DNA from: Azolla caroliniana
Lineage: Eukaryota; Plantae; Polypodiophyta
NCBI GenBank assembly: GCA_043228905.1
Contig: JBHGNT010000008.1
Coordinates: forward strand, 7,812,001 to 7,876,000
DNA length: 64,000 nt
Reading direction: 5' to 3'
Numbering within the stretch: the stretch's first letter is position 1; each line of letters starts with the position of its first letter. The notes below the pieces were generated by a model. It had not been told where the DNA came from and made no database searches. It saw nothing but the letters and a program-made list of their open reading frames with translations. A program made the translations under genes and the position numbers. Positions 47,551 through 64,000 of the stretch are shown here, piece by piece.

Positions 47551-48266
47551 TGTTATGTACACATAACGTTGGTGAGGGTAGGTCACTAATATTTACATTA
47601 GTGAAGGGTATGTTCACTATTATTAAAAAGGGGACTAATGATTGGATAGAATGAATGATATGTGCATGCACTATCATGATTTAGACAACCAATGAATAGA
47701 GAGCCTTTTAGAAAGGCACATCTATTCAAGGGGCCTAGGAAAAGGTATAAATATGAGGCTTAGCTACCCTCATAGAAAATCACGTCGGAAGGCTGCTGTT
47801 GTAGACACCGGTGGTGCGGGCTAGGCTTTCGTCTCGACGATCGTGTTTATCTCTTCCAAGGTATTAGTCATCCTAATATCCGGCGGTATGGGACGTCGGT
47901 GGTAGGTTGGCTATGTCTAGATCATAGCTCGGGGGTGGTCGGGTGGAACGGGTTCTTCTATCCAATCTATTTTCTTCCTTTTTACTTGATTTGGTCTATT
48001 GATTAGTAATAGACTCTTAACAGTGGTATCAGAGCTTTTACTAACAAATTTTTGTTGTTTTGATGTTTTTTGCGTGTGTGCGAGGGGGATCTAACAAGGC
48101 TCGTCATGCTCTTCTCAGGATCAAAACAACACTCTAAACCCGGTATTCTTCTTTTTTGATCTCTTCTCTTTTTCTATTATGCGTTCTTTATGGTCGAATC
48201 AAATTGGTATTACGTTTTATTCTCTTTCTTTCTACCTCCTACTACGCTACGATTTTACTTATTATT

Positions 48267-48791
48267 ATGCATCGGGCCGAGCGTGTTTGCACTAATCGCA
48301 CACGCTCAACTCATGGCCTTTTGCATATTGCGATATATATCCCACTCTCTCCTCTCTTGAACTCTTACGATAATAATTATTCTTGTGCATTGGGTCGAGC
48401 GTGTTTGCTCTAATCGCACACGCTTATCTCATGGCCGTTTTGCATATGATGTTGAGTATACCACTCTTCCCCTCTATTGAGCCATCACTTGGCCGATTCT
48501 AAGGGATGATGTGGCCTTGACGAGGTGTATGTTGCCTACCTATGCCACTCTACTCTCTATTAAGACATCAATTGGCCGATTCTATGGGATGTTGTGGCCT
48601 TGACAAGGTATATGTAGCTTACATATGCCACTTTCCTTTTTAATTAGCCATCAATTGGCCGATTCTAAGGGATGATGTGGCCTTGACGAGGTATATGTCA
48701 CTTACCTATGCCACTTTCCTCTTTAATTAGCCATTACTTGGCCGATTCTAGGGATATGTGGTGGTCTTGAGGAGGTGCATGTCAACTACCC
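48267..48791. repeat. Tandem repeats in the chromovirus 5' UTR (2 x ~119 bp, then ~3.7 x 83 bp)
   Basis: GAGCGTGTTTGC.CTAATCGCACACGCT block at ~48279 and ~48397; GCCATCAATTGGCCGATTCTAAGGGATG... unit at 48481, 48564, 48647, 48730. Confidence 0.9.
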
Positions 48792-49794: not shown

Positions 49795-52700
49795 TTGAAC
49801 GCAGTTGGAACGATCTCTCCAAATGAGACCTCGCAACCCCAATCCGCATCTCGCACACAAGCTGAGATCACTATTGAGCAATTGCTCACTACTACCTTGA
49901 ATCAAGTGGCCGAAATGAGACAGGCCAATATGGCATTGGAAAAGAAATTCCAAGAATTAACTATTGAGTCCAAGAAAGAAGGTGAACCTTCCTTCGTAGT
50001 CACGCCTTTCAAGGGAGATAAGAAAGAAAGAACCGAGGAGGCCATTAGCACTTGGCTTGGTCGTTGGGAGTCTCACTTTGAGCTTCATCCCAAGCCCGAT
50101 GCAGTAAAAATTGGTTATGTCGGTCGTGAGTTAGGTGGCCGAGCTGCTGCTTGGTGGCGTGGCCTAAGGACCGCAAAAAACTTACCCACAACTTGGGAAG
50201 GTTTCGTTGATGTTTTTAAGAAACAATTCTTGCAGCCACCTTCTCAAACCGAACAAGCGCAACACTTGCTCACATTGTCTAGTAAGCCATTTACCTCTCT
50301 CGAGGATTATGTGCATCACGCTCGGACCCAGATCCAAAAATCGGGACTTACGGGTGAGAAATGGTTTGTCGCTTGTTTTTTGAATGGTATTCCCAATGGG
50401 GATTATCATTGGATTGTCCATGACAAGGACCCCACAACTTTCGAGGAAGCCGTCAACATTGTGCTGCGATACCATAGGACTTCCAAGAAAGACCACAATA
50501 AACCTGAGTTCGCCAAAACTCCGAATGTCAAGTTCATTGGGAAACGTAAGCAATCCAGTGACACTCTTGACCGCGACTCAAAGAAACCGAACCTCTTCTG
50601 TGCATATTGCAAGAAGCGGGGCCACACAAAGGATACCTGTCGTCATCTTGAGAGGAAGTCAATGAACACCCCTCCTCAAGACAAATCTACGAGTCACACA
50701 GGTGAGTCTTTTGATATTGTTGAAGTTCATACCAATCACTTAAGTTTATGTGAATGCACTTTTCCTTCACATTTACTTGGACCTAATGATTTACTCCGAG
50801 CAGTCGGATATATCAATGGAACACAAGCACATTTCTTGTTTGATTCCGGTAGTTCTCACAATTTTCTTAATGATCACTTTGTGCAGCAAATGGAGCTCCA
50901 CATAAACGCAAGTGATCATATCTATCAAGTTCACATGGCAAATGGAAACGTTCAATACATTAGTGGCATTGTTTGTCAACTGCCAATTCAAATAGATACT
51001 TATTTGGAGAAGCTTGACTTTCATGTTATGAAATTACAATCCGCAGATGTCATTTTAGGATATCCTTGGTTTTTTAATAAAAACCCTTCTTTGTCCATTG
51101 ATTGGGTTAATCACTCAATCACATTTGAACTTAATAATTGTAAACATTTTATTCAATGTTCCAAACTTCCTTCTCATTCACTTGTGTCTTCTAAATCTTT
51201 AAGTGAGTATTCTAGTTCATTAATTTATTCGTGTGTAATTGATCCTGCGGTTCAATTTTATTATTTTAATATTGACGCCACACAATTACCACATTTTGAG
51301 CAACGATTACTCGACTCTATTTTAGAGGATTTTCAAGATGTGTTTCCTACTGAATTACCGCTTACTTTACCACCTAAACGTAATGTGGACCATCAAATTG
51401 AACTCATCCCTGGGGCTGCTCCTGTGAGCATTCCACCTTACCGACTTAGTCGATTAGAAGAGGATGAGATCGCTAAACAACTTAAGGAATACTTGAGTAT
51501 GGGCCACATTAGGTATAGTAAATCACCTTGGGGTGCGCCAGTTCTATTAGTCAAGAAGAAGGAAGGTTCGTGGCGAATGTGTATCAATTATCGCCGTTTG
51601 AATAAAATGACAATTAAGAATGCATATCCATTACCTCGTGCCGATGATTTGATTGATCGTTTGCACGGGGCTCGATATTTTACGAAAATTGACTTACGAA
51701 CTGGTTATCATCAGATTCGCATCGCCGAGGATGATATTCCTAAAACCGCTTTTCGTACGCGCTATGGCCATTATGAGTTTTTAGTCATGCCATTTGGGTT
51801 GACTAATGCTCCAGCCACATTCCAACAAGCGATGAATGATGTTTTCCGAGATCAACTCGGTGATTTTGTTGTCGTCTTCTTGGATGATATTTTGATATAT
51901 AGCCGTACCTTGCAAGATCATGTTCAACATGTTCGATTTGTTTTGCGAAAGTTGCGTGACAACTCTTTCTATGCAAAACATTCAAAATGTGACTTCTTCC
52001 AAAAATCTATTATGTACCTAGGTCATTTAATTACAGAAAATGGCGTTGAAATTGAACCTTCTCGTATTGAAAAGGTTAAACTTTGGCCCATTCCTCGTAA
52101 TATTCGTGAACTTAGATCATTCTTAGGGTTTGTTGGATTTTTACGAAAATCAATTCGTAACTATTCCAAATTGACTACGCCATTAACTGACCTTTTAAAA
52201 GGTCATCCACGTAAGTCTGTCAAACAAATTTCATGGAATGAACAACTTGACAAATCATTTGAGACACTCAAGGAGCATGTGTGTCAGGCTCCCACTCTTC
52301 TATTACCAGACCCTTCTAAGCCTTTCTCAATTGAAACCGATGCTAGTGATTATGCTATTGGTGCCGTTCTTTATCAAGGTGGTCACCCTATTGCTTTTGA
52401 AAGTAAGAAGCTTGATGCTGCTCAATCTCGGTATTCGGTTCAAGAGAAAGAGTTGTTTGCGGTGATACACGCACTTAAAACATGGAGGCACTATCTCTAT
52501 GGAAATAAATTTGTGGTTACAACAGACCATCAATCATTAAAGTATTTTTGTGACCAGCCCGATCTTGTTGGTCGTAAAGGCCGTTGGGCTGACCTTATGC
52601 AAGATTTTGATTTTTCCATACGATATCGCAAGGGTTCTATGAACACCGTTGCTGATGCTCTTAGTCGCATTAAAGAAGTTAACATGCTTAGCTTCACGGA

Positions 52701-54186
52701 AATAAAATCTGATCTTTTAGATCACCTTCGAGGGAAATACCTTGATGACAGTTATTTCTCAAAATACTGGACGAAAGCCGAATCTGGTTTAGATGCCGAT
52801 ACTAGCACCCTACCCTCGAAGGCGACCTTTCACATTACAAACGGTTTGCTCTACCGTAGTGGAAAGGTCTGTGTTCCAGATTTACCAAATGTTAAACAGA
52901 AAATTTTTCATGAATGTCATGATGCACCATCTGCTGGTCATCCTGGAATACAACGCACACTCGTTCTCATCTCGTGTACTTTTTTCTGGCCTAAGATGCG
53001 CTCTGACGTGCATAAATACGTAACTCAATGCTTACAATGTCAGATTAATAAGTCGGAACGACTTAAAGCTGCTGGTCTTTTACATCCCTTAGATATTCCC
53101 AACAATAAATGGGAAAGTATCTCGATGGATTTTATTGTTAGTTTACCTCGTACACAGAGGGGTCATGATGCCATATGGGTTGTCGTTGACAGGCTAACAA
53201 AATTAGCTAGATTTATTCCTACAAAAACCACAGTAACCGCTCAACAGTTGGCTTATCAATTTGTTGATGAGTTATTTCGTTTTTATGGATTACCGATGGA
53301 TATTGTTAGTGATCGAGATTCCAAGTTTACTAGTGACTTTTGGACTCAGGTCTTTAAGAAACTAGAAACTACGTTGAGCATGAGTTCCGCAGATCATCCT
53401 CAGTCTGATGGACAAACTGAACGAGTTAATCAAATTATTGAGGACATGCTTCGAGCTTATGTAGCAAAAACCCCTTCTAAGTGGGAGCAATACCTTCCTA
53501 TCTTAGAATTTGCCTATAATAGCTCTAAACATACATCCACTGGATATAGTCCTTTTATGTTGATGTATGGTTTTCAGCCACGTGCCCCAGTTGATGTCAC
53601 GATTCATCGTGATACATTAGACAGTACACGCAATTTTTTGCAAGACATGAACCAAATGTTGCATATTGCCAAAGAAAATGTCAAGACAGCTCAAGATCGT
53701 GCTCGATTTTATGCTGATCAGGATAGACGTCCTCGTGCATTTACTATTGGTCAAAAAGTTTTTTTGCGTGTCCCGACTGATTCTACGTCATTATCTACGG
53801 GCAAGTGCGCTAAGTTAGCCCCACGATATTGTGGCCCATTTGAAATCCTTAAGCGAGTTGGGTCATCTGCTTATCACCTTGCCTTACCTCGTAACGTTGG
53901 TATTCATCCTGTTTTTCACGTCAGTCGTCTAAAACCATTTTTAGGCTCTGGTGATAACACCATCACAATCCAAGATCTTGTAACATTAGAGGATTTTTCT
54001 TACAAACCTCATGTTCCTGAACGAATTCTTGATTCTCGTACAAAACGTTTACGTTCTAAAGAGATTCGGCTATTCAAGATCAAATGGATGGATAAACCTA
54101 TTGATGATGCCACATGGGAACGCGAGCATTCGCTTAAGGCACAATTTCCTCACTTTATATTGCAAGAGTGCAATCTTTTGAAGTAG
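49795..54186 (+). CDS. Gag-Pol polyprotein (gag, CCHC, protease, RT, RNase H, integrase, chromodomain), intact single ORF
   Basis: [67 protein letters not shown]-terminal PERILDSR...IKW...ATWE. Start codon uncertain. Confidence 0.95.
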
Positions 54187-54767
54187 GGGAGTATGTTATG
54201 TACACATAACATTGGTGAGGGTAGGTCACTAATATTTACATTAGTGAAGGGTATGTTCACTATTATTAAAAAGGGGACTAATGATTGGGGGTAAAAGCAT
54301 GCGAGTGGAAACACTATTATAGCTAATTAGCTACTAAAATGGCCATAGCTAATTAGCTATTTGTTTAGCTAGTCTTTTTTGTGGGAAAATCAAATATTTG
54401 AAAAACTAATTTATGAAAAAACTCAAATATTTGAACTTCTGTTTCAGACGTAGTGGAACTTGGGGAATATCACCATCATCTAAGGTCGACTTCAATGTCA
54501 TCAATTTCCTGTTTAGCCTAAGTCTGATTTTGAACGCAGATGGAGTACTCAGAGCACGAACGCAGACGTAGCTCCCGCAACTGCAAAAAATCGACATTGC
54601 AGATTGAGAGCTACAACACAGAACCCGCTCGATCATCGTCCAGGTATGTTTCAGTTACAGAAACCCCAAACATTTGTTTTTTCTTTTTGACTACTGTCTG
54701 AACTTTGGTGCCGATTCATATTTCCCCAAAATCGAATAGGGCGAAGTCCTTGGAGTCCCATACAAGG

Positions 54768-57700
54768 ATGTCTCGCAAATTGGGGAGTAGCAACAGGTGT
54801 GTTTATATTACTTTTTTTGTGTTTAATCCTGTCTTTAGTGATTAGGGTTTGTGATTGAAATTTCTGATTAGGGTTTGTGATTGAAATTTCTGATTAGGGT
54901 TTTTGATTATAAATTTCTGATTAGAATTTCTGAATAGGGTTTCTGGTTACAAATTTTGATTACAAATTAGAATTTCTGAATAGGGTTTTTGTTTATAAAT
55001 TTCTGCTTAGGATTTCTGATTAGGGTTTGTGATTGAAATTTTTTATTAGGGTTTCTGATTGAAATTTCTGATTAGGGTTTTTGATTATAAATTTCTGATT
55101 AGAATTTCTGAATAAGGTTTTTGGTTACAAACTTCTGATTACAGATTTTGATTAGGGTTTCTGATTTCAAACTTCTGATTACAGATTTTGATTAGGGTTT
55201 CTGATTTCAAATTTCTGAATACAAATTATGATTAGGGTTTCTGATTTGCTAAGTTAAAGATTTTGCACCATTTTTGTTGTTGTTGATTGGGGTTTTTGAT
55301 TCTCACATATTCTGATTTTGCACTATTTCTGATTTCTGAAATGATATTTCAGATGGCTCGTTCCTCCGTATACGAGGGTGCTAAACTTCGCAAAATTTTG
55401 CGAGACAAAGGAGGACTTCCACAACACCTATGGTCTGTCACTCGAGGGTGTTGACCCTGCTGTCCTAAGTGATAAATTGATCAGTGATATAGACTGGATG
55501 ACAGTATATACAGTGCCTAGAGTCAAAGGCAAGGTCAAGCTGAAGCATGTACGAGCCGACTTGTACGATGACTGCATGAGACTGCACCAGAAAGTTCATC
55601 AGGAGATCCCAGTCAACAATGAGTTGTCAGTTTCATTTGCTAGATCATTTGCATATGAGTACTGCAAAACAGCGAAGGAATCTAGAGACCCTGAAATGTA
55701 TAGGGTAGCTTGGGCAGTCTATGGTGAGGCATCGGTAAAAAGATGCCGAAAGATGGGGACCTTGGCACAAAAAATAGACAGATTTTGGAGCATGGCAGCT
55801 GTTGATGCAACTGCCGACTCCCAGCAAGACCGGGGGCATACACCACACCGACACCCAAGGAAAGCCAATGTCGATGATACAGGTGAGACATTGGTTAGCT
55901 ATATGCTAAACAATGTCCATGAAGCCTGTGAGACATTGGCATTTTTTAAGACTGATTTAGAGAAAGCCACAATGGCTTATGCAATGGAGAGCAAAGTTAC
56001 TTTTGCTGTTACAACAATTAGAAATAAGATTCAGGTAACTATTGTTTTGCTGGTATGTGATTGTGTTATAAATAACGGGTAAAATGTGCTAATCAAGCAT
56101 TATCTGGAATAGGTTGCGCAACAGGATCTTGAATTAGAGGGGCCACTGGATCCCCAGCGTAAAATAGAACTGCAAATAGAGATCCAGGTTCTTTCAATGA
56201 ACCTGGACCTTCTAGGTGTAAATACTGTTGCAGATTACAATTTGGATAAGCTTCAAGTAAGTTAACGATTCCTGAGCAAAGTTGGTGTATCTTTCAACAA
56301 CAAGAATAATTAATCGGTAAATTTCTCTGTTGCGTTGAAGGAACAATACATTCATCAAGAACAGGTAGTTAGCTGCCTTAAGAAGAAGCTATATTTTGTG
56401 GAGGGAATGGTAAGGACCAGACAGGATTTGGACCTGAACATTCTTGCTCCCTTACCAAATGAAGTAGAACCAGAAAATGATTTATTGACAGTTCAAGCAC
56501 GTTGCATCGCTTGCGGGTTAGGTGTGGAGGACAAAACTGCGTCTTTGTTGGTTCACCTACAACCATGCAACCACACATACCATCTGCTTTGTTTTCAACA
56601 TGCCTGTCGAATTGCTGCATTCTGTTTGGGAGATTGCAGTACAACTCTACCAAATGAGTGGAGAAAACAAACAGGTATACCATACTGTAGCTAATAAGCT
56701 TAGTCTTTTCTAATTAGCTATCCTACTAGCTAATTAGCTACTGGCAGCTAATGAGCTACTAGATAATTAGCTATCCTAGTAGCTAATTAGCTATGGTACT
56801 AGCTAATTAGCTAGTACCATAGTTGTGTAAAAAAGCTAAATAGCTATCCTACTAGCTAATTAGCCACTGGCAACTAATTAGCTATCCTAGTAACTAATTA
56901 GCTACTGCCATAGTTGTGTAAAGTAGCTAATAAGCTATCCTAGTAGCTAGTTAGCTATGGTACTAGCTAATTAGCTAGTACCATAGTTGTGTAAAAAAGC
57001 TAATTAGCTATCCTACTAGCTAATTAGCTACTGGCAACTAATTAGCTATCCTACTAGCTAATTAGCTATCATAGTAGCTAATTAGCTACTGACATAGTTG
57101 TGTAAAGTAGCTAATAAGCTATCCTAGTAGCTAGTTAGCTATGGTACTAGCTAATTACCTAGTACCATAGTTGTGTAAAAAAGCTAATTAGCTATCCTAC
57201 TAGCTAATTAGCTACTGGCAACTAATTAGCTATCCTACTAGCTAATTAGCTATCATAGTAGCTAATTAGCTACTGACATAGTTGTGTAAAGTAGCTAATA
57301 AGCTATCCTAGTAGCTAATTAGCTACTGGCAGCTAATTAGCTATCCTAGTAGCTAATTAGCTACTGGCATCTAATTAGCTGTCCTAGTAGCTAATAAGCT
57401 ATCCTAGCTACTACATAGTTGAGAAAGTAGCTAATTAGCTTTCATTGTAGCTAATTAGCTATCCTAGCTACCACCATAGTTAGTAAAGTAGCTAATTAGC
57501 TATCCTAGCTACTACCATAGTTAGTAAAGTAGCTAATTAGCTATCCTAGCTACTACCATAGTTGAGTAAAGTAGCTAATTAGCTACCATAGTAGCTAATT
57601 AGCTATCCTAGCTACTACTATAGTTGTGTAAAGTAGCTAATAAGCTATCCTACTAGCTAATTAGCTATCCTAGTAGGTAATTAGCTATGGTACTAGCTAA

Positions 57701-58981
57701 TTAGCTAGTACTATAGTTGTGTAAAAAAGCTAATTAGGTATCCTACTAGCTAATTAGCCACTGGCAACTAATTAGCTATCCTAGTAACTAATTAGCTACT
57801 GCCATAGTTGTGTAAAGTAGTTAATAAGCTATCCTAGTAGCTAATTAGCTACTAGCAGCTAATTAGCTATCCTAGTAGCTAATTAGCTATCCTACTAGCT
57901 AATTAGCTACTACCATAGTTGAGTAAAGTACCTAATTAGCTATCCTACTAGCTAATTAGCTACTACCATAGTTGAGTAAAGTACCTAATTAGCTATCCTA
58001 CTAGCTAATTAGCTATTGGCAACTAATTAGCTATCCTAGTAGCTAATTAGCTATCCTACTAGCTAATTAGCTGCTGGCAACTAATTAGCTATCCTACTAG
58101 CGAATTAGCTATCCTAGTAGCTACTGCCATAGTTGTGTAAAGTAGCTAATAAGCTATCCTAGTAGCTAATTAGCTACTGGCAGCTAATTAGCTATCCTAG
58201 TAGCTAATTAGCTACTGGCAGCTAATTAGATGTCCTAGTAGCTAATAAGCTATCCTAACTACTACCGTAGTTGAGTAAAGTACCTAATTAGCTATCCTAA
58301 CTACTACCATAGTTGAGTAAAGTACCTAATTAGCTATCATACTAGCTAATTAGCTATCGTACTAGCTAATTAGCTATCCTAGCTTCTACCATAGTTTAGT
58401 AAAGTAGCTAATTAGCCATCCTAAATAACTGTCATGTTATTGTAGAATCTTGTGGATTAAGGACGGCACATGATGTGTCTGGTGCTGATGATGCTGCAAC
58501 AGATGAGGATACTACTACCAATGTGGCTGAAAGTAAGAGTCCTGCTATCACATCTCCTTCAGATCAGCTGCACCCTATTCTTTTGGAACAGTGTACTGAA
58601 TTAGGCAACGATGTGAAATGCCATGAAATAGTGGAAACAACATGTAAAACTGAGGTTCACAACAACAGTGTTTATGAACACTTGATGCAACATTTCTTCG
58701 AGTCTCAAGACCTTGATTCCACCCCACCGAGCCCAACTACTGAAAATGTCCAAACAGATCCCTCTGTACTTGAAAAGCTAGTTCAAGAAACGGCTGATGT
58801 GCAATTAGCTGCCGAGGCGATGGGAAGGTTGTCGGAGGAGGACACACTTGCGCATTGGGTCCTAGAAGCAAGGCTAAATGGGGAACCAACCAGAAAAAGG
58901 CTGAAGAAGGGGCCACGATCGGGAACAAGACCAGTTACTCGGTCAAGGGGCCCAGACGTAGTGGAGCGAAATACTGTTTAG
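54768..58981 (+). CDS. Transposon-borne RING-H2 protein, 5 exons: 54768-54796, 55353-56034, 56113-56256, 56341-56674, 58446-58981 (574 aa)
   Basis: All four introns are GT-AG and phase-compatible (2,0,0,1), giving 1725 nt without an internal stop. CIAC...PCNHTYHLLC...CLGDC RING-H2-like motif; coiled-coil-like middle; acidic tail ending in basic RKRLKK. Confidence 0.75.
54838..55245. repeat. Telo-box-containing 13/26-bp tandem repeat in intron 1 of the RING gene
   Basis: Unit TTAGGGTTTCTGA-TTGAAATTTCTGA; 9 perfect TTAGGGTTT copies. Confidence 0.9.
56688..58420. repeat. TAGCTAATTAGCTA palindromic satellite (~20-bp period, 164/184-bp higher-order blocks) filling intron 4 of the RING gene
   Basis: Dozens of copies of the 14-bp palindrome; the marker AGTTGTGTAAAAAAGC recurs at 56821, 56985, 57169 and ~57715. 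Confidence 0.97.
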
Positions 58982-59151
58982 TTGGATATGATTGTTAGCT
59001 TAGGGATTTTGCTAGGGTTTTATGAAGTTTTACTATCCTGTTGGACAAGTAAAACCTCAGATTGGTTGTTGCTTGATCCACATTATGTAATGGAACTCTA
59101 TGATGTTTTTCCAAGATAATTTGAAGAGTGTTGTTCTATGACTGAAACTCT

Positions 59152-60285
59152 TTGATGTTCAGGATATTGTTTTGTGAGACTATTAGTTACTTTGTGAGTG
59201 TGAATATGTTGGTGTTTTCTGATGTTGCAGAGTCTAAAGGGTTTGATTCTATTGCTCGTAAGGCCAATGGCAGTGTGGATACTGTTGATGTTGCGGCATG
59301 TTTAAAGGGCCCCATCTTGAAAGTAGATGTAGCAACTGACACAAGTGATCTGGTCACACAAGTTGATCAAGCATGTAGCACGGATGACTTGGTGTTGCAG
59401 GTAGATGCAGCATGTAGCACGGATGACTTGGTGTTGCAGGTAGATGCAGCATGTAGCACGGATGACTTGGTGTTGCAGGTAGATGCAGCATGTGATACCA
59501 GTGGACTGATATCGAGCAGAACAGTAGCTACATGCACTGAGGTAATCCAAGGATTGATAACTAAGTCGACAAAACAAGAGCACCAGAATGTGAAGCTAGG
59601 CCCAACACAGTCGACTAGGGGTTTAAAGAGGAAAAGGACACCAGTTGTGTCAGCCGAACCTGAGCTGATTGAGATTGATCGTATCCTACCAGAAAATGGT
59701 GTAACAGCGGCTCAGTTTCAGGAATGGAAACCTAAACCACTAGAAGTCGAAAGAAGAGCCTTGATCTTGGAGCTTGATAAAGTCTTGATGAGTGTGAGAT
59801 ATATGCAGCCAAGGAGGGACGCAAATCAGTTTCTAGAGTGGGCTGTGGAATACTTTGATTTGTTTATTTGGAGTGAAAAACCAAAATCAGATGTGTGGAA
59901 GTGTTTGGCAAGATTCTTCCCAAAATGGCGAAGTCGTTTTAAAGGTCAATGGGCACGAGAAAATTGTGAGCAAATGGAAGCTGCAAGATTCAAGAGACTT
60001 TCTGATTTTTGGGCTACTTGGCCTGAATATAATGCCGACAATACATTGATTTTGGATACAGAACATTTCCGACACTACTTCAATATTCGGAGATGCTGTC
60101 TCATTCTACCCGAGGAAATGCCTGAACAATACCTGGTGCAAACAGTGAGCTGCCAACTAGGTGCATGGTTGTGGACTCCATACCGAGCTCAATATGCGGA
60201 TAATATATGTAGACTCGTTCCACTGACTAGCAAGAGCTTAGCTGTTTATAGGAGATTTGTAGACATTTCCAATGGTAATTTATAA
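59152..60285 (+). CDS. FCP1/NIF (HAD-like) phosphatase-homology protein, probably catalytically dead, with N-terminal 13-aa repeats
   Basis: ALILELDKVL (at the DxDxT position), QFLEWAVEYFDLFIWS, WARENC, KRLSDFW, YNADNTLILDT match the NIF domain layout. The 5' end is uncertain; possible splice acceptor at 59230. Confidence 0.65.
   Translation: MMFRILFCETISYFVSVNMLVFSDVAESKGFDSIARKANGSVDTVDVAACLKGPILKVDVATDTSDLVTQVDQACSTDDLVLQVDAACSTDDLVLQVDAACSTDDLVLQVDAACDTSGLISSRTVATCTEVIQGLITKSTKQEHQNVKLGPTQSTRGLKRKRTPVVSAEPELIEIDRILPENGVTAAQFQEWKPKPLEVERRALILELDKVLMSVRYMQPRRDANQFLEWAVEYFDLFIWSEKPKSDVWKCLARFFPKWRSRFKGQWARENCEQMEAARFKRLSDFWATWPEYNADNTLILDTEHFRHYFNIRRCCLILPEEMPEQYLVQTVSCQLGAWLWTPYRAQYADNICRLVPLTSKSLAVYRRFVDISNGNL
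59362..59497 (+). repeat. 39-bp coding tandem repeat (VDAACSTDDLVLQ x ~3.5)
   Basis: GTAGATGCAGCATGTAGCACGGATGACTTGGTGTTGCAG repeated. Confidence 0.95.
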
Positions 60286-60430
60286 ATATGTAAAGAGATG
60301 ACATTATTCAATGAAGAATTTAATTACTTGTTCCCACTGTACTTATCTACTGTGTAATTTGAGGAATATGTTGTAGATTGTTGATTTCATTCTATTGATG
60401 ACTATTTAGCTATTGACAGCTAATTAGCTG

Positions 60431-60944
60431 CATTTGTACAGCTAATTAGCTGCATTTGTACAGCTAATTAGCTACTGATGACTATTTCGCTATAACTTAT
60501 AACTTAAAACTTAACAAAAAAGACATGATTTTATTGAGAAAGAAGCACAGAAAGCAGACTGTATACAAGAAATTGATTCCAAACGAATTTATTGATCTGT
60601 TTTCGCGAAATACATGTTTGTTTTACAAGAGAACATGGTAAGTGCTACTTGTAGCTACAAATTCCATGGCATACTATTGTAAATACATTTGTACAGCTAA
60701 TTAGCTGCATTTGTACAGCTAATTAGCTACTGATGACTATTTCGCTATAACTTATAACTTAAAACTTAACAAAAAAGACATGATTTTATTGAGAAAGAAG
60801 CACAGAAAGCAGACTGTATACAAGAAATTGATTCCAAACGAATTTATTGATCTGTTTTCGCGAAATACATGTTTGTTTTACAAGAGAACATGGTAAGTGC
60901 TACTTGTAGCTACAAATTCCATGGCATACTATTGTAAATACATT
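60431..60944. repeat. 255-bp tandem duplication of the transposase 3' end and 3' UTR
   Basis: Block starting CATTTGTACAGCTAATTAGCTGC at 60431 and again at 60686. Confidence 0.92.
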
Positions 60945-62751
60945 CATACACATTAGCACCAACAGTGTATAAACCGGAGCAGCTATTGTATTCTGACATT
61001 GGGACGTTGATGCATCTGACCAAATGAGAGTACATATACGCCGCTGGTTTGTCTTCTAACAGCCTGTACACATATTCGTAGTCATCTAGTTTTGCATAAA
61101 AAATGCCTTCGATGTAGAATGTCCTGGCAGATACAAAATTTCCCCATGCATCTACAATATTCTGCCTTGCACACTGTTTACTAACTGTGCACTTTAATAT
61201 ATAGAAATCAGCACCCTCTGAATTGCCTTCTTCAGCATTTACAGTGAAGTTATCCCCAACGTTCAGGACATCACTCAAAGTATCTCCAAGTCCCTCATAT
61301 GTGACGTCAGCATTCTGCCCTGTTTCTCCATCAACTGCTTCCTTATCATTCAGAGTGTGATACTCCCAATTCTCAATGTATGCTTTGTTTAGACAATATC
61401 TCCAATTTCCCTGCACACAATGGAAGCAAAAACAAGTCAATTCTCTAACCGCAATACAATGACCATCCAACCTGGAATAACCGCGAACAACATGCAGAGA
61501 TCGCAATTTGGGAATTCCTTGGCACTCCCAGGTCTTCTCCCTATTTACTTCATCTATCTTCACTTCCCAAAATTCACGTTTGATATCTCGAACTTGGGAG
61601 GAATAAACACCTGTGGCACTCGTCGACATATTTGTTCTTAAAAATTCAACTACATGTGATGCACAATTCATGTGCACACCATCTGTCTTTAGTTGTTCAT
61701 GGGTAAGTGCCCGCTTTATAACAGCCCCTGCACCATCATGTTCACCTTTATCATGGCCAGACCCAAAAAAATTCCATCTCATCTCCAAACCTGTTATAGC
61801 AGGATACCTCCCCACAAAATAAAATGGACGTCGAGCCTTGAATTGTGACGCAGCTCCGTCAGACCAGACCCAATGTTGAGTAAGCTCCAAACGTTGAGCT
61901 AATAACCACTGCCAATGTAACTTAAAACAGTGTTGGACGAACAAGGTATCATGCTTCTTATCATTGGAAATAAAGAAATGAATTACTTTTTTAACATCAC
62001 CTGAAACTCGAAAATATGTTATGTGCACAAAAATGGTTACCTGAACTGAACACCAATGCATAGATTGAATTTCATTCTGCTGCTTGAAAGTATAATTCTC
62101 TGCGAAATCTACTACTGAGACTACTACATCATTTGGGAAATCAGATATGCAAGTCTTAAACTGATGGGCCTGCCATGAATAAATGAAGTTGTGTTTAATG
62201 AACTTTCCTAGAGATACTACAAACAGAGACACCAAATCCCTTGGTTTAAGCATCTTCCGAACTAGATCCTTTCTTTTACACACCTTTCCTTCGAAATTGG
62301 TGTTCACTGACTCAAATAACTTCACAGAGATCAATATTTCACTACTCAATTCATTTGGACACCACCTAAATCTAGTAGGGCCACAATCTTGACATAAACC
62401 CATGACACATTTATGAATATGGAAGATAGCGTCAGTTTCTCTCGGACACAATATTGAATCTAATAAATAACTCATGGAAGAGATAACATGCTCAGATGAT
62501 TTACACTCCTCTTGCGGGCTTGATCGACAGATTGGGCACCCACATGTGCAAACTGTATTAGTTAGGGATGCGCTATGGTGACGTAGTAGATTAACAGAGT
62601 CCTTCAGAAAACCCATCTGTACATGGTAAATGCAACAACATGTGTATCGATCCTTTAAGCGTCTCACAAAGTGTGGCTTAAGAGACTCGAATGTTCGTAG
62701 TTGAACTTTGATAGTTGGATGCATTCGTTTGAACCTAATAAATAAATCGAC
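60910..62751 (-). CDS. Sola2-like DDD transposase, last exon (N-terminus upstream, beyond a satellite intron)
   Basis: FESLKPHFV, TCCCIYH, Cys clusters, VDFAENY (D at 62107-62109), EIQSMHW, WSDGAASQFK (D at 61858-61860), GSGHDKGEHDGAGAVIKR (D at 61735-61737), C-terminal CFCFHC. Phase-0 acceptor ...ACGCAG|GTCGAT at 62751. Confidence 0.8.
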   Translation of the reverse strand, partial: VDLFIRFKRMHPTIKVQLRTFESLKPHFVRRLKDRYTCCCIYHVQMGFLKDSVNLLRHHSASLTNTVCTCGCPICRSSPQEECKSSEHVISSMSYLLDSILCPRETDAIFHIHKCVMGLCQDCGPTRFRWCPNELSSEILISVKLFESVNTNFEGKVCKRKDLVRKMLKPRDLVSLFVVSLGKFIKHNFIYSWQAHQFKTCISDFPNDVVVSVVDFAENYTFKQQNEIQSMHWCSVQVTIFVHITYFRVSGDVKKVIHFFISNDKKHDTLFVQHCFKLHWQWLLAQRLELTQHWVWSDGAASQFKARRPFYFVGRYPAITGLEMRWNFFGSGHDKGEHDGAGAVIKRALTHEQLKTDGVHMNCASHVVEFLRTNMSTSATGVYSSQVRDIKREFWEVKIDEVNREKTWECQGIPKLRSLHVVRGYSRLDGHCIAVRELTCFCFHCVQGNWRYCLNKAYIENWEYHTLNDKEAVDGETGQNADVTYEGLGDTLSDVLNVGDNFTVNAEEGNSEGADFYILKCTVSKQCARQNIVDAWGNFVSARTFYIEGIFYAKLDDYEYVYRLLEDKPAAYMYSHLVRCINVPMSEYNSCSGLYTVGANVYECIYNSMPWNL

Positions 62752-62782
62752 CTGCGTAATAAAGGGGAATTAGTTATTCTCG

Positions 62783-64000
62783 TAACTAGCTAACTATCCT
62801 AGTAGCTAATTAGCTATTCTAGTAGCTAGTTAGCTATTCTAGTAGCTAGTTAGCTATTCTAGTAGCTAATTAGCTATCATGGTAGCTAATTAGCTGTCCT
62901 AGTAGCTAATTAGTTGTCCTAGTAGCTAATTAGCTATCATGGTAGTTAATTAGCTGTCGTAGTAGCTAATTAGCTATCATGGTAGCTAATTAGCTGTTCT
63001 AGTAGCTAATTAGCTATCATGGTAGCTAATTAGCTGTAGTAGTAGCTAATTAGCTATCATGGTAGCTAATTAGCTGTCCTAGTAGCTAATTGGTTGTCCT
63101 AGTAGCTAATTAGCTATCATGGTAGCTAATTAGCTGTCGTAGTAGCTAATTAGCTATCATGGTAGCTAATTAGCTATTCTAGTAGCTAATTAGCTATTCT
63201 AGTAGCTAATTAGCTATCATGGTAGCTAATTAGCTGTCGTAGTAGCTAATTAGCTGTCCTAGTAGTTAATTAGTTGTCCTAGTAGCTAATTAGCTATCAT
63301 GGTAGCTAATTAGCTGCTCTAGTAGCTAATTAGCTATCATGGTGGCTAATTAGCTTTCCTAGTAACTAATTAGCTATCATGGTAGCTAATTAGCTGGTCT
63401 AATAGCTAATTAGCTATCATGGTGGCTAATTAGCTTTCCTAGTAACTAATTAGCTATCATGGTAGCTAATTAGCTGGTCTAGTAGCTAATTAGCTATCAT
63501 GGTAGCTAATTAGCTGGTCTAGTAGCTAATTAGCTATAATGGTGGCTGATTAGCTTTCCTAGTAACTAATTAGCTATCATGGTAGCTAATTAGCTGGTCT
63601 AGTAGCTAATTAGCTATCATGGTAGCTAATTAGCTATCACGGTGGCTAATTAGCTGTCCTAGTAACTAATTAGCTATCATGGTAGCTAATTAGCTGGTCT
63701 AGTAGCTAATTAGCTATAATGGTGGCTAATTAGCTATCCTAACTAATTAGCTATCATGGTAGTAGCTATTGAGAGTAGCCAGTTACCTATGTAGTAGCTA
63801 TCATAGTAGCTAATTAGCTATCATGGTAGCTAATTAGCTTTCCTAGTAGCTAATTAGCTGGTAATAACGAAATAGCTAACTAGCTACCATGATAGCTAAC
63901 TAGCTAGCAGTACAACTAATTATCTGGTAGTACCTAAATTAGCTATTGAGAATAGCTAATTAGCTATCATGGTAGTAACTATTGAGAGTAGCTAGTTACC
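62783..64000. repeat. TAGCTAATTAGCTA palindromic satellite (20-bp unit, 40-bp dimers) in the transposase intron
   Basis: Alternating TAGCTAATTAGCTATCATGG and TAGCTAATTAGCTGTCCTAG units to near the window end. Confidence 0.97.

Follow-up and report, generated by a model that had tools for sequence, protein, structure and literature searches.

A probable Sola2-type DNA transposon in Azolla caroliniana with RING-like and NIF-like accessory regions and intronic palindrome arrays

To our knowledge Sola is among the least studied superfamilies of DNA transposons, and we know of no active member that has been characterized biochemically. The superfamily, with Sola2 as one of its groups, was reportedly set out by Bao et al. 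in 2009, and a 5'-GRG terminus is the rule for Sola2. Sola elements are defined by a target site duplication (TSD) of 4 bp (PMC10741241), and in plants they have been on record since 2009, as Sola1 in Physcomitrella and, by repeat annotation, in the ferns Ceratopteris and Azolla (PMC10741241, PMC6890710, PMC6786969, PMC9033089), with rare recently active Sola clusters across plants already reported. Two published Sola2 transposases of Dictyostelids, Sola2_DFa-2 and Sola2_PPa-1, carry the motif blocks MDFKEN, WSDGAKHFK and HGKSDVD with D-D-D spacing of 87/43 in 888 amino acids (aa); the ends of these elements seemingly begin with G (as machine-read from the supplement), and cargo-bearing Sola2 elements with a Fanzor1 gene are known from the same hosts (PMC3627910). 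Here we analyzed a stretch of 64,000 nucleotides from Azolla caroliniana (assembly GCA_043228905.1, contig JBHGNT010000008.1, positions 7,812,001 to 7,876,000 of the forward strand), hereafter the window, and give a probability of roughly 0.8 to the reading that the block, which starts at 54289 and extends past 64000, represents a single copy, at least ~11 kb long, of a young Sola2-type transposon that moves by cut-and-paste and exists in multiple copies, and that this copy sits in the 3' long terminal repeat (LTR) of a chromovirus. A first-pass annotation of the window had regarded Sola2 elements as transposase-only and known mainly from animals and protists, which was overstated in view of the plant Sola elements on record since 2009 and the published Sola2 elements that carry Fanzor1 (PMC3627910).

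The window transposase, of ~860 aa, has the blocks VDFAENY, WSDGAASQFK and H(G)KGEHDG with D-D-D spacing of 83/41. In a comparison by eye, which covered motif blocks and spacing only, it matched Sola2_DFa-2 and Sola2_PPa-1 at the motif level, as the first-pass annotation had suggested from the motif set, and the transposase probably belongs to the Sola2 group. The features held in common are a DDD transposase of ~860-890 aa with D-F-x-E-N, W-S-D-G-A-x-x-F-K and H-G-K-x-x-x-D at similar spacing, short terminal inverted repeats (TIRs) that start with G, and large elements (10-15 kb) able to carry a second gene. The GRG type of end was likewise recovered, given that the perfect 24-bp TIR starts with GGG and those of relatives with GGGTA or GGGTT. 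Unlike the Dictyostelid Sola2 elements, the window element carries an orphan helical, RING-like and NIF-like unit instead of Fanzor1, has introns filled with lineage-specific palindrome arrays, and resides in a land plant.

An element-specific second gene together with repeated subterminal motifs is also found in MuDR (MURA/MURB), En/Spm (TnpA/TnpD), PIF/Harbinger (ORF1) and VANDAL21 (VANC). The window element differs from all of these in its superfamily, in the unrelated domains of its proteins and in having arrays in introns too, and it is known here from sequence. VANC and Plant Mobile Domain (PMD) type factors guard against transcriptional silencing, and the VANDAL accessory protein and motifs co-evolve. 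In the literature, Repbase aside, we found no paper on a RING/NIF accessory gene or on intronic motif arrays in Sola; plant Sola and cargo-bearing Sola2 were known before, and the RING/NIF cargo and the arrays would be the new part.

One end of the element is fixed by the retroelement in which it lies. The 5' LTR of this Ty3/gypsy chromovirus runs from 47551 to about 48023 and is followed directly by a primer binding site of the tRNA-Met type (TGGTATCAGAGC, at 48025) and, at 49795-54186, by an intact open reading frame (ORF) of 1463 aa that comprises gag, protease, reverse transcriptase (RT), RNase H, integrase and chromodomain. The 3' LTR starts at 54194, and positions 54194-54288 were identical to 47551-47645 of the 5' LTR at 94 of 95 sites, in agreement with the earlier description of a 3' LTR (one mismatch in 95 bp) that ends abruptly. 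Beyond these 95 bp the copies diverge: the 5' LTR continues with ATAGAATGAATGATATGTGC (read further, ATAGAATGAATG), whereas the 3' side continues from 54289 with GGGTAAAAGCATG (read further, GGGTAAAAGCATGCGAG), placing the cut at 54288/54289. Since the transposon interrupts the 3' LTR at this point, its insertion postdates the LTR element, and the relative age first proposed for the two stands. In the chromovirus leader, between the primer binding site and gag (48248-48753), there are tandem repeats of 118 nt and 83 nt.

The block was predicted to open with a transposon end at its GGG, and a 24-bp TIR, GGGTAAAAGCATGCGAGTGGAAAC, begins exactly at 54289. The same 24 nt were identified, pointing inward, ~0.8 kb upstream of transposase exon 1 in L008 (a sister copy from an ENA contig), the exon-2 ORF of which has 604 aa, the same length as P0001 (96% match to the window transposase). 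That L008 ends on its transposase side with the identical 24 nt indicates that the window family has perfect 24-bp TIRs, and the inverted end that had been expected, ...CTCGCATGCTTTTACCC, is present in this copy. An exact-match scan of metagenome contigs yielded 12 further termini (L010-L015 and L017-L022), 3 on the cargo side and 9 on the transposase side, each with a different, unrelated flank that stops exactly at GGG. One of them, L021, lies at another locus, yet shares 99.6% identity with the window across 554 nt. Among contigs of sequencing run X1 over 53700-56700, two more flanks join at 54288/54289, and the uninterrupted LTR was also seen. In total the same 24-nt terminus borders at least 14 further insertions, whose flanks are unrelated, and these, with the near-identical L021, support the earlier claim of a multi-copy, recently mobile element. 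A 13th exact match in the scan (L016:2849-2868, JGI contig Ga0209780_1031351) covers the first 20 nt of the TIR and is unrelated beyond; the match is due to chance, or it marks the end of a very distant element.

Over 53700-56700 the window copy differed from all other contigs at ~10 sites in 2.4 kb. Sequencing runs of just 71-93 million letters contained 69-79% of the words of the element stretch, and across runs X2-X6 (71-394 million letters) ~70% of the words of 54289-56700 were present. Finding ~70% of the words in such small runs points to a high copy number for a plant genome, and suggests a very high copy number of the element in the source organism of the runs, with the proviso that contig depth is not the same as copy number. 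Many variant contigs per site were observed in X5, X9 and X10, the three runs compared that bear an organism label.

Two relatives were recovered complete: L004, in which 12.4 kb separate perfect 23-bp TIRs, and L006, with 29-bp TIRs that match at 26 of 29 positions and lie 9.95 kb apart. The TIRs of both begin with GGGT, and a 13-nt terminal motif, GGGTAWAWGCATG, is common to the window TIR and both L004 TIRs. No recognizable TIR was present in a JGI relative (L023, 41% identity). Candidate TSDs from paired single-end contigs, L017/L008 (ATGA) and L010/L011 (AAAA), were rejected as chance 4-nt matches, because the L017 flank is a copia RT, the L008 flank is exon 1 of an older Sola-like gene and no empty site spans the junctions; among the 14 single-end loci there was no verifiable TSD pair. 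The L008 copy itself sits in an older, diverged Sola-like transposase gene (L008:775-1823, minus strand), a nested insertion, and opposite-strand ORFs in this flank resemble the C-terminal half of exon 1 and the start of exon 2.

The transposase is encoded on the minus strand by an ORF of 604 aa (60910-62724), with DFAENY at residue 206, SDGAAS at 288 and EHDGAG at 328. A splice acceptor at 62753-62752 is in frame nine codons above its ATG, and L001 and L008 have, further upstream, a helix-turn-helix (HTH) ORF of ~250 aa that ends at a GT donor, after which comes the 20-bp array. The 604-aa ORF is, from this arrangement, exon 2 only of a predicted transposase of ~860 aa, of which the HTH exon 1 would lie past 64000, as would the second TIR. 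The HTH matched Pfam HTH_29 and HTH_11 below threshold (E ~4e-5), and in the NCBI gene model of a Ceratodon purpureus homolog the HTH exon and the catalytic part are spliced together. Homologs numbered 113 at E<=1e-3, from mosses, a liverwort, ferns, conifers, echinoderms and a rotifer, and a profile search added one from Klebsormidium; an exact look-up of the window transposase returned no existing record. The protein of the charophyte Klebsormidium nitens (P0128, 1180 aa, 39% identity) is annotated as a fusion with leucine-rich repeat domains and may be a domesticated gene or a chimeric gene model.

The three predicted catalytic residues, D206, D289 and D330, were invariant among 20 diverse homologs. 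An AF2 model of the transposase (pLDDT 79) has RNase H topology (beta1-3/alpha/beta4/alpha/beta5/alpha), and NurA, retroviral integrases, IstA, Hermes and RNase H1 were among the weak matches that Foldseek returned for it. The motifs DFAENY, SDGxxxQFK and HxKGxxDG listed in the first-pass annotation were all found, with the modification that HDKGEHDG stands in the window copy in place of the HGKG found in every relative: position 325 (~61750), five residues before the third catalytic Asp, is Asp in the window (G325D) and Gly in all 19 other aligned sequences from plants and animals. The transposase was also correctly described as convergent with non-transposase coding sequence; the count of two such regions did not hold, in that there are ~5 predicted exons and a NIF ORF, which form one or two genes (Table 1). 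Between the convergent gene ends there is a perfect 255-bp tandem duplication in which three CAGCTAATTAGCTG palindromes and the final 31 nt of the transposase ORF are repeated, and the 100% identity of its units indicates that the duplication is very recent.

The 14-bp palindrome TAGCTAATTAGCTA occurs in 52 perfect copies in the window, all at or beyond 54320, where shuffled sequences gave an expectation of 0, and its 8-mer core AATTAGCT occurs 109 times, once outside the block. All 52 perfect copies being inside the element, the impression that the palindrome runs throughout the block was accurate. Copies adjoin the TIR and fill one intron in each gene, and at the transposase-side end of L008 AATTAGCTA follows directly after the TIR. 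In every lineage examined an array fills the transposase intron, and usually a cargo intron too, with a motif specific to the lineage: TAGCTAATTAGCTA in the window family, GTGGTAATTAGTA in L003, GGTAGCTACC in L004 and L005, and GTACCACCT in L006. The array motif also adjoins the TIRs, and in L006 it is inside the TIR itself. The same array position with a changed motif suggests co-evolving protein-binding sites, most simply for the HTH, and the palindromes are probably transposase-binding sites.

Table 1. Features of the transposon and of its insertion site in the window (positions are those of the window)
Position	Strand	Feature	Basis
54194..54288	+	Truncated 3' LTR of Ty3/gypsy chromovirus, insertion target of the transposon	LTR comparison
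54289..54312	+	Cargo-side TIR, 24 bp, starts GGGTAAAAGCATG	Same 24 nt closing the other end of L008
54320..54359	.	Two subterminal 14-bp palindromes (distance from the tip 31 and 57 nt), putative binding sites for the transposase	Motif count
54768..54796	+	Accessory exon 1 (predicted), ATG at 54768, donor GT at 54797	MSR...W..PPY matches L004 ORF
54797..55352	+	Intron 1 (predicted), 13/26/40-nt repeats with TTAGGGTTT, telobox-like	Repeat analysis
55353..56034	+	Exon 2 (predicted), orphan all-alpha domain (core residues ~10-156) and start of long helix	Homology to L004, L006, L007, Adiantum
56113..56256	+	Exon 3 (predicted), coiled-coil part; flanking introns of 78 nt and 84 nt keep frame	P0118, P0119
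56341..56673	+	Exon 4 (predicted), RING-H2-like finger C-x2-C ... C-x-H-x2-H-x2-C ... C-x3-C	Sub-threshold Pfam match, conserved ligands
56674..58445	+	Intron 4 (predicted), 1.77-kb satellite on 14-bp palindrome, 53 AATTAGCT cores	Repeats; array at same place in L004
58446..58981	+	Exon 5 (predicted), acidic S/T-rich tail, basic end, stop at 58979-58981	Reading frame kept over intron 4
59152..60285	+	NIF/FCP1-like (HAD) ORF, after 39-bp coding repeats (59317-59511)	Pfam; same position in L004, L006
60431..60940	.	Perfect 255-bp tandem duplication, carries CAGCTAATTAGCTG motifs	Repeat analysis
60910..62751	-	Transposase exon 2, predicted catalytic DDD core (D206, D289, D330 counted from ATG at 62724)	Acceptor AG 62753-62752
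62752..64000	-	Transposase intron (predicted), palindrome array of 20-bp units, 47 cores, runs off the window	Repeat analysis, L001/L008

The accessory unit lies on the plus strand between the TIR and the transposase, and its linkage to the transposase extends well beyond the window family. In L004 (transposase ~50% identical) the helical domain and RING are in one ORF of 547 aa, followed by an array and then by NIF; in L006 (also ~50%) helical domain, RING and NIF are colinear; and in the moss Ceratodon (L007, transposase 35%) helical domain and RING are in one ORF of 450 aa. All three have the unit in colinear order and convergent with the transposase, and on the fern-like contigs L004 and L006 it lies between the TIRs. 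Consistent with this layout, Adiantum nelumboides has proteins homologous to the L004 cargo ORF, one of which (P0126) is a gene model that joins the helical domain and NIF, and P0118 and P0119 align straight through 55351-56649. The presence of the same layout inside TIR-bounded relatives at ~50% transposase identity upholds the proposal that the RING and NIF regions are part of the transposon, and the old linkage seen in L004, L006 and, NIF excepted, L007 does the same for that of a multi-gene, cargo-bearing element in a land plant. Judged by this shared organization, the RING-like and NIF-like regions are the element's own, not captured host genes. The contrary reading, that RING and NIF are ordinary host genes beside a transposase-derived gene, draws on nothing except their non-transposase nature and is very improbable, considering that they lie inside TIR-bounded multi-copy elements in the window lineage, L004 and L006 and that the helical domain belongs to a tiny family, for which 1.84 billion proteins yielded 136 representative clusters.

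Exon 5 had no homolog by tblastn. The NIF ORF follows a stop codon and would be a gene of its own or else, within the accessory gene, an alternative or final exon. Predicted intron 1 contains 9 of the 12 TTAGGGTTT motifs of the window, all on the plus strand.

A helical domain, a coiled coil, a RING-like finger and a NIF-like domain were distinguished in the accessory unit. The helical domain was modeled by AF2 with a pLDDT of 89 (exon 2), rising to ~97 over residues 10-150. Foldseek against the PDB returned nothing for it at E<=0.001, VIA-align matched the coiled-coil helix alone, an Atlas shape search gave TM values of 0.44 or less, and an Atlas feature search gave no usable match. In the RING-like finger, eight ligands are conserved in L004 and Ceratodon, with a last pair of the form C-x3-5-C, not C-x2-C, and RING families recur weakly among members of the helical family. 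The NIF ORF matched Pfam NIF (PF03031) at 30.8 bits against a cut-off of 21.8, and L004, L006 and P0126 matched too; a phmmer search of this ORF against the PDB gave no match. Like the CTD phosphatase-like HAD proteins of the FCP1/SCP group (NIF, PF03031), the window protein has a Pfam match above threshold and retains HAD motifs II (Ser), III (Lys) and IV (Asp). Unlike them, the window and its relatives lack DxDxT/V in motif I, which reads E-L-D-K-V in the window and D-M-N-G-V, D-L-Q-G-V and D-I-N-G-V in three relatives. Since no copy has both catalytic aspartates, canonical catalysis is unlikely, and the domain retains the family fold and is probably not an active phosphatase.

A further comparison is with the PMD (PF10536) proteins MAIN and MAIL1, which work with the PP7L phosphatase and take part in transposable-element silencing (PMC7156037; bioRxiv 10.1101/2024.09.27.615353). 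Like PMD-PP7L, the window element combines a helical domain associated with a transposable element, a phosphatase-like partner and specific DNA motifs, and a weak Atlas shape match linked a PMD cluster to the helical domain of the cargo (TM 0.38 over 123 residues). Membership of the helical domain in PMD was rejected, as there was no Pfam match even at E<=10 in 50 members, no feature-based match and a TM below 0.5; the modeled likeness is only a lead.

Several observations weigh against the overall reading of the block as a young, cargo-bearing Sola2-type transposon. The right end of the window copy lies beyond 64000, and the 4-bp flanks of the complete relatives are imperfect (TCCA/TTCA for L004 and AAGC/AATT for L006, both on low-coverage contigs). 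The G325D substitution may impair catalysis and could have inactivated the window copy, which may then rely on transposase from sister copies. No named Sola2 protein was among the 120 profile-search matches listed, which comprised streptophyte, animal and unnamed proteins only. On the side of the cargo, the exon/intron models were drawn by eye and homology, with GT-AG introns that keep frame, and the exons were searched and folded singly; the RING-like exon matched Pfam zf-RING_2 below threshold (E=0.038, score 14.7 against a cut-off of 27.3); no NIF domain was detectable in Ceratodon L007; and none of the RNA runs contained the element stretch.

One alternative is that the arrays are neutral satellite expansions in introns and that the accessory ORFs play no part in transposition and are passengers in decay. 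Array length does vary among copies, with a transposase intron of ~640 nt in L008, ~1000 nt in L001 and >1250 nt in the window, and the missing RNA matches, the sub-threshold RING match and the degenerate NIF motif I point the same way. We nevertheless judge this alternative unlikely, given that arrays occupy equivalent positions in four diverged lineages, each with its own motif beside or inside the TIRs, and that the linkage of cargo and transposase persists as transposase identity falls from 50% to 35%, the frames remaining open and one domain folding with confidence.

It is slightly less likely again that the transposase belongs to another superfamily or to another Sola group (Sola1, Sola3 or a new one) and that its likeness to Sola2 stops at the motif level. 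Such an assignment could draw on the absence of a Pfam family match for the transposase, on the lack of a named Sola2 protein noted above, on the lack of a clear 4-bp TSD at the flanks compared, on the Sola of record in Physcomitrella being Sola1 (PMC9033089), and on a DUF7869 cluster that came up nearby in an ESM Atlas feature search. A text search for the DFAEN motif produced nothing relevant. On the other side, hmmscan found no DUF7869 match at E<=0.1, three motif blocks and both D-D spacings agree with two published Sola2 transposases, and the length (~860 aa against 888 aa) and the 5'-G terminus also fit Sola2.

Under the preferred reading of a Sola2-type transposon with its own accessory unit, the element would consist of two convergent units, a two-exon transposase (HTH, array intron, DDD exon) and the accessory unit. 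The HTH domain would probably recognize the lineage-specific palindrome beside each TIR, upon which the DDD core would excise and reinsert the element, and additional sites in the intronic arrays may bind the transposase and so titrate or concentrate it. Most plausibly, the accessory protein would target either a host factor or the transposase, serving as a ubiquitin-ligase-like adaptor combined with a pseudo-phosphatase that binds the substrate. Past 64000, this model predicts the rest of the array, HTH exon 1, a spacer and then ...GTTTCCACTCGCATGCTTTTACCC. The retention of the accessory protein with the transposase in fern-like lineages, and of helical domain and RING in moss, suggests that it is needed for propagation of the element. 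We speculate, with little confidence, that the accessory unit is a host-manipulation module, in which a RING ligase-like part, a helical domain that targets chromatin or DNA and a substrate-trapping pseudo-phosphatase would be recruited to the arrays and would counter silencing or license transcription, the helical and RING parts having co-evolved with Sola2 transposases since before the split of mosses and ferns.

With its exact 24-bp ends, 99.6%-identical copies, a candidate motif and an accessory part kept in moss and fern, the element offers a system for studying how Sola transposases find their ends. It also allows one to ask whether the RING-like and pseudo-phosphatase parts help in transposition itself or in evading silencing by the plant. 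If its abundance is as high as the small sequencing runs imply, the element would bear on the share of DNA transposons in large fern genomes.

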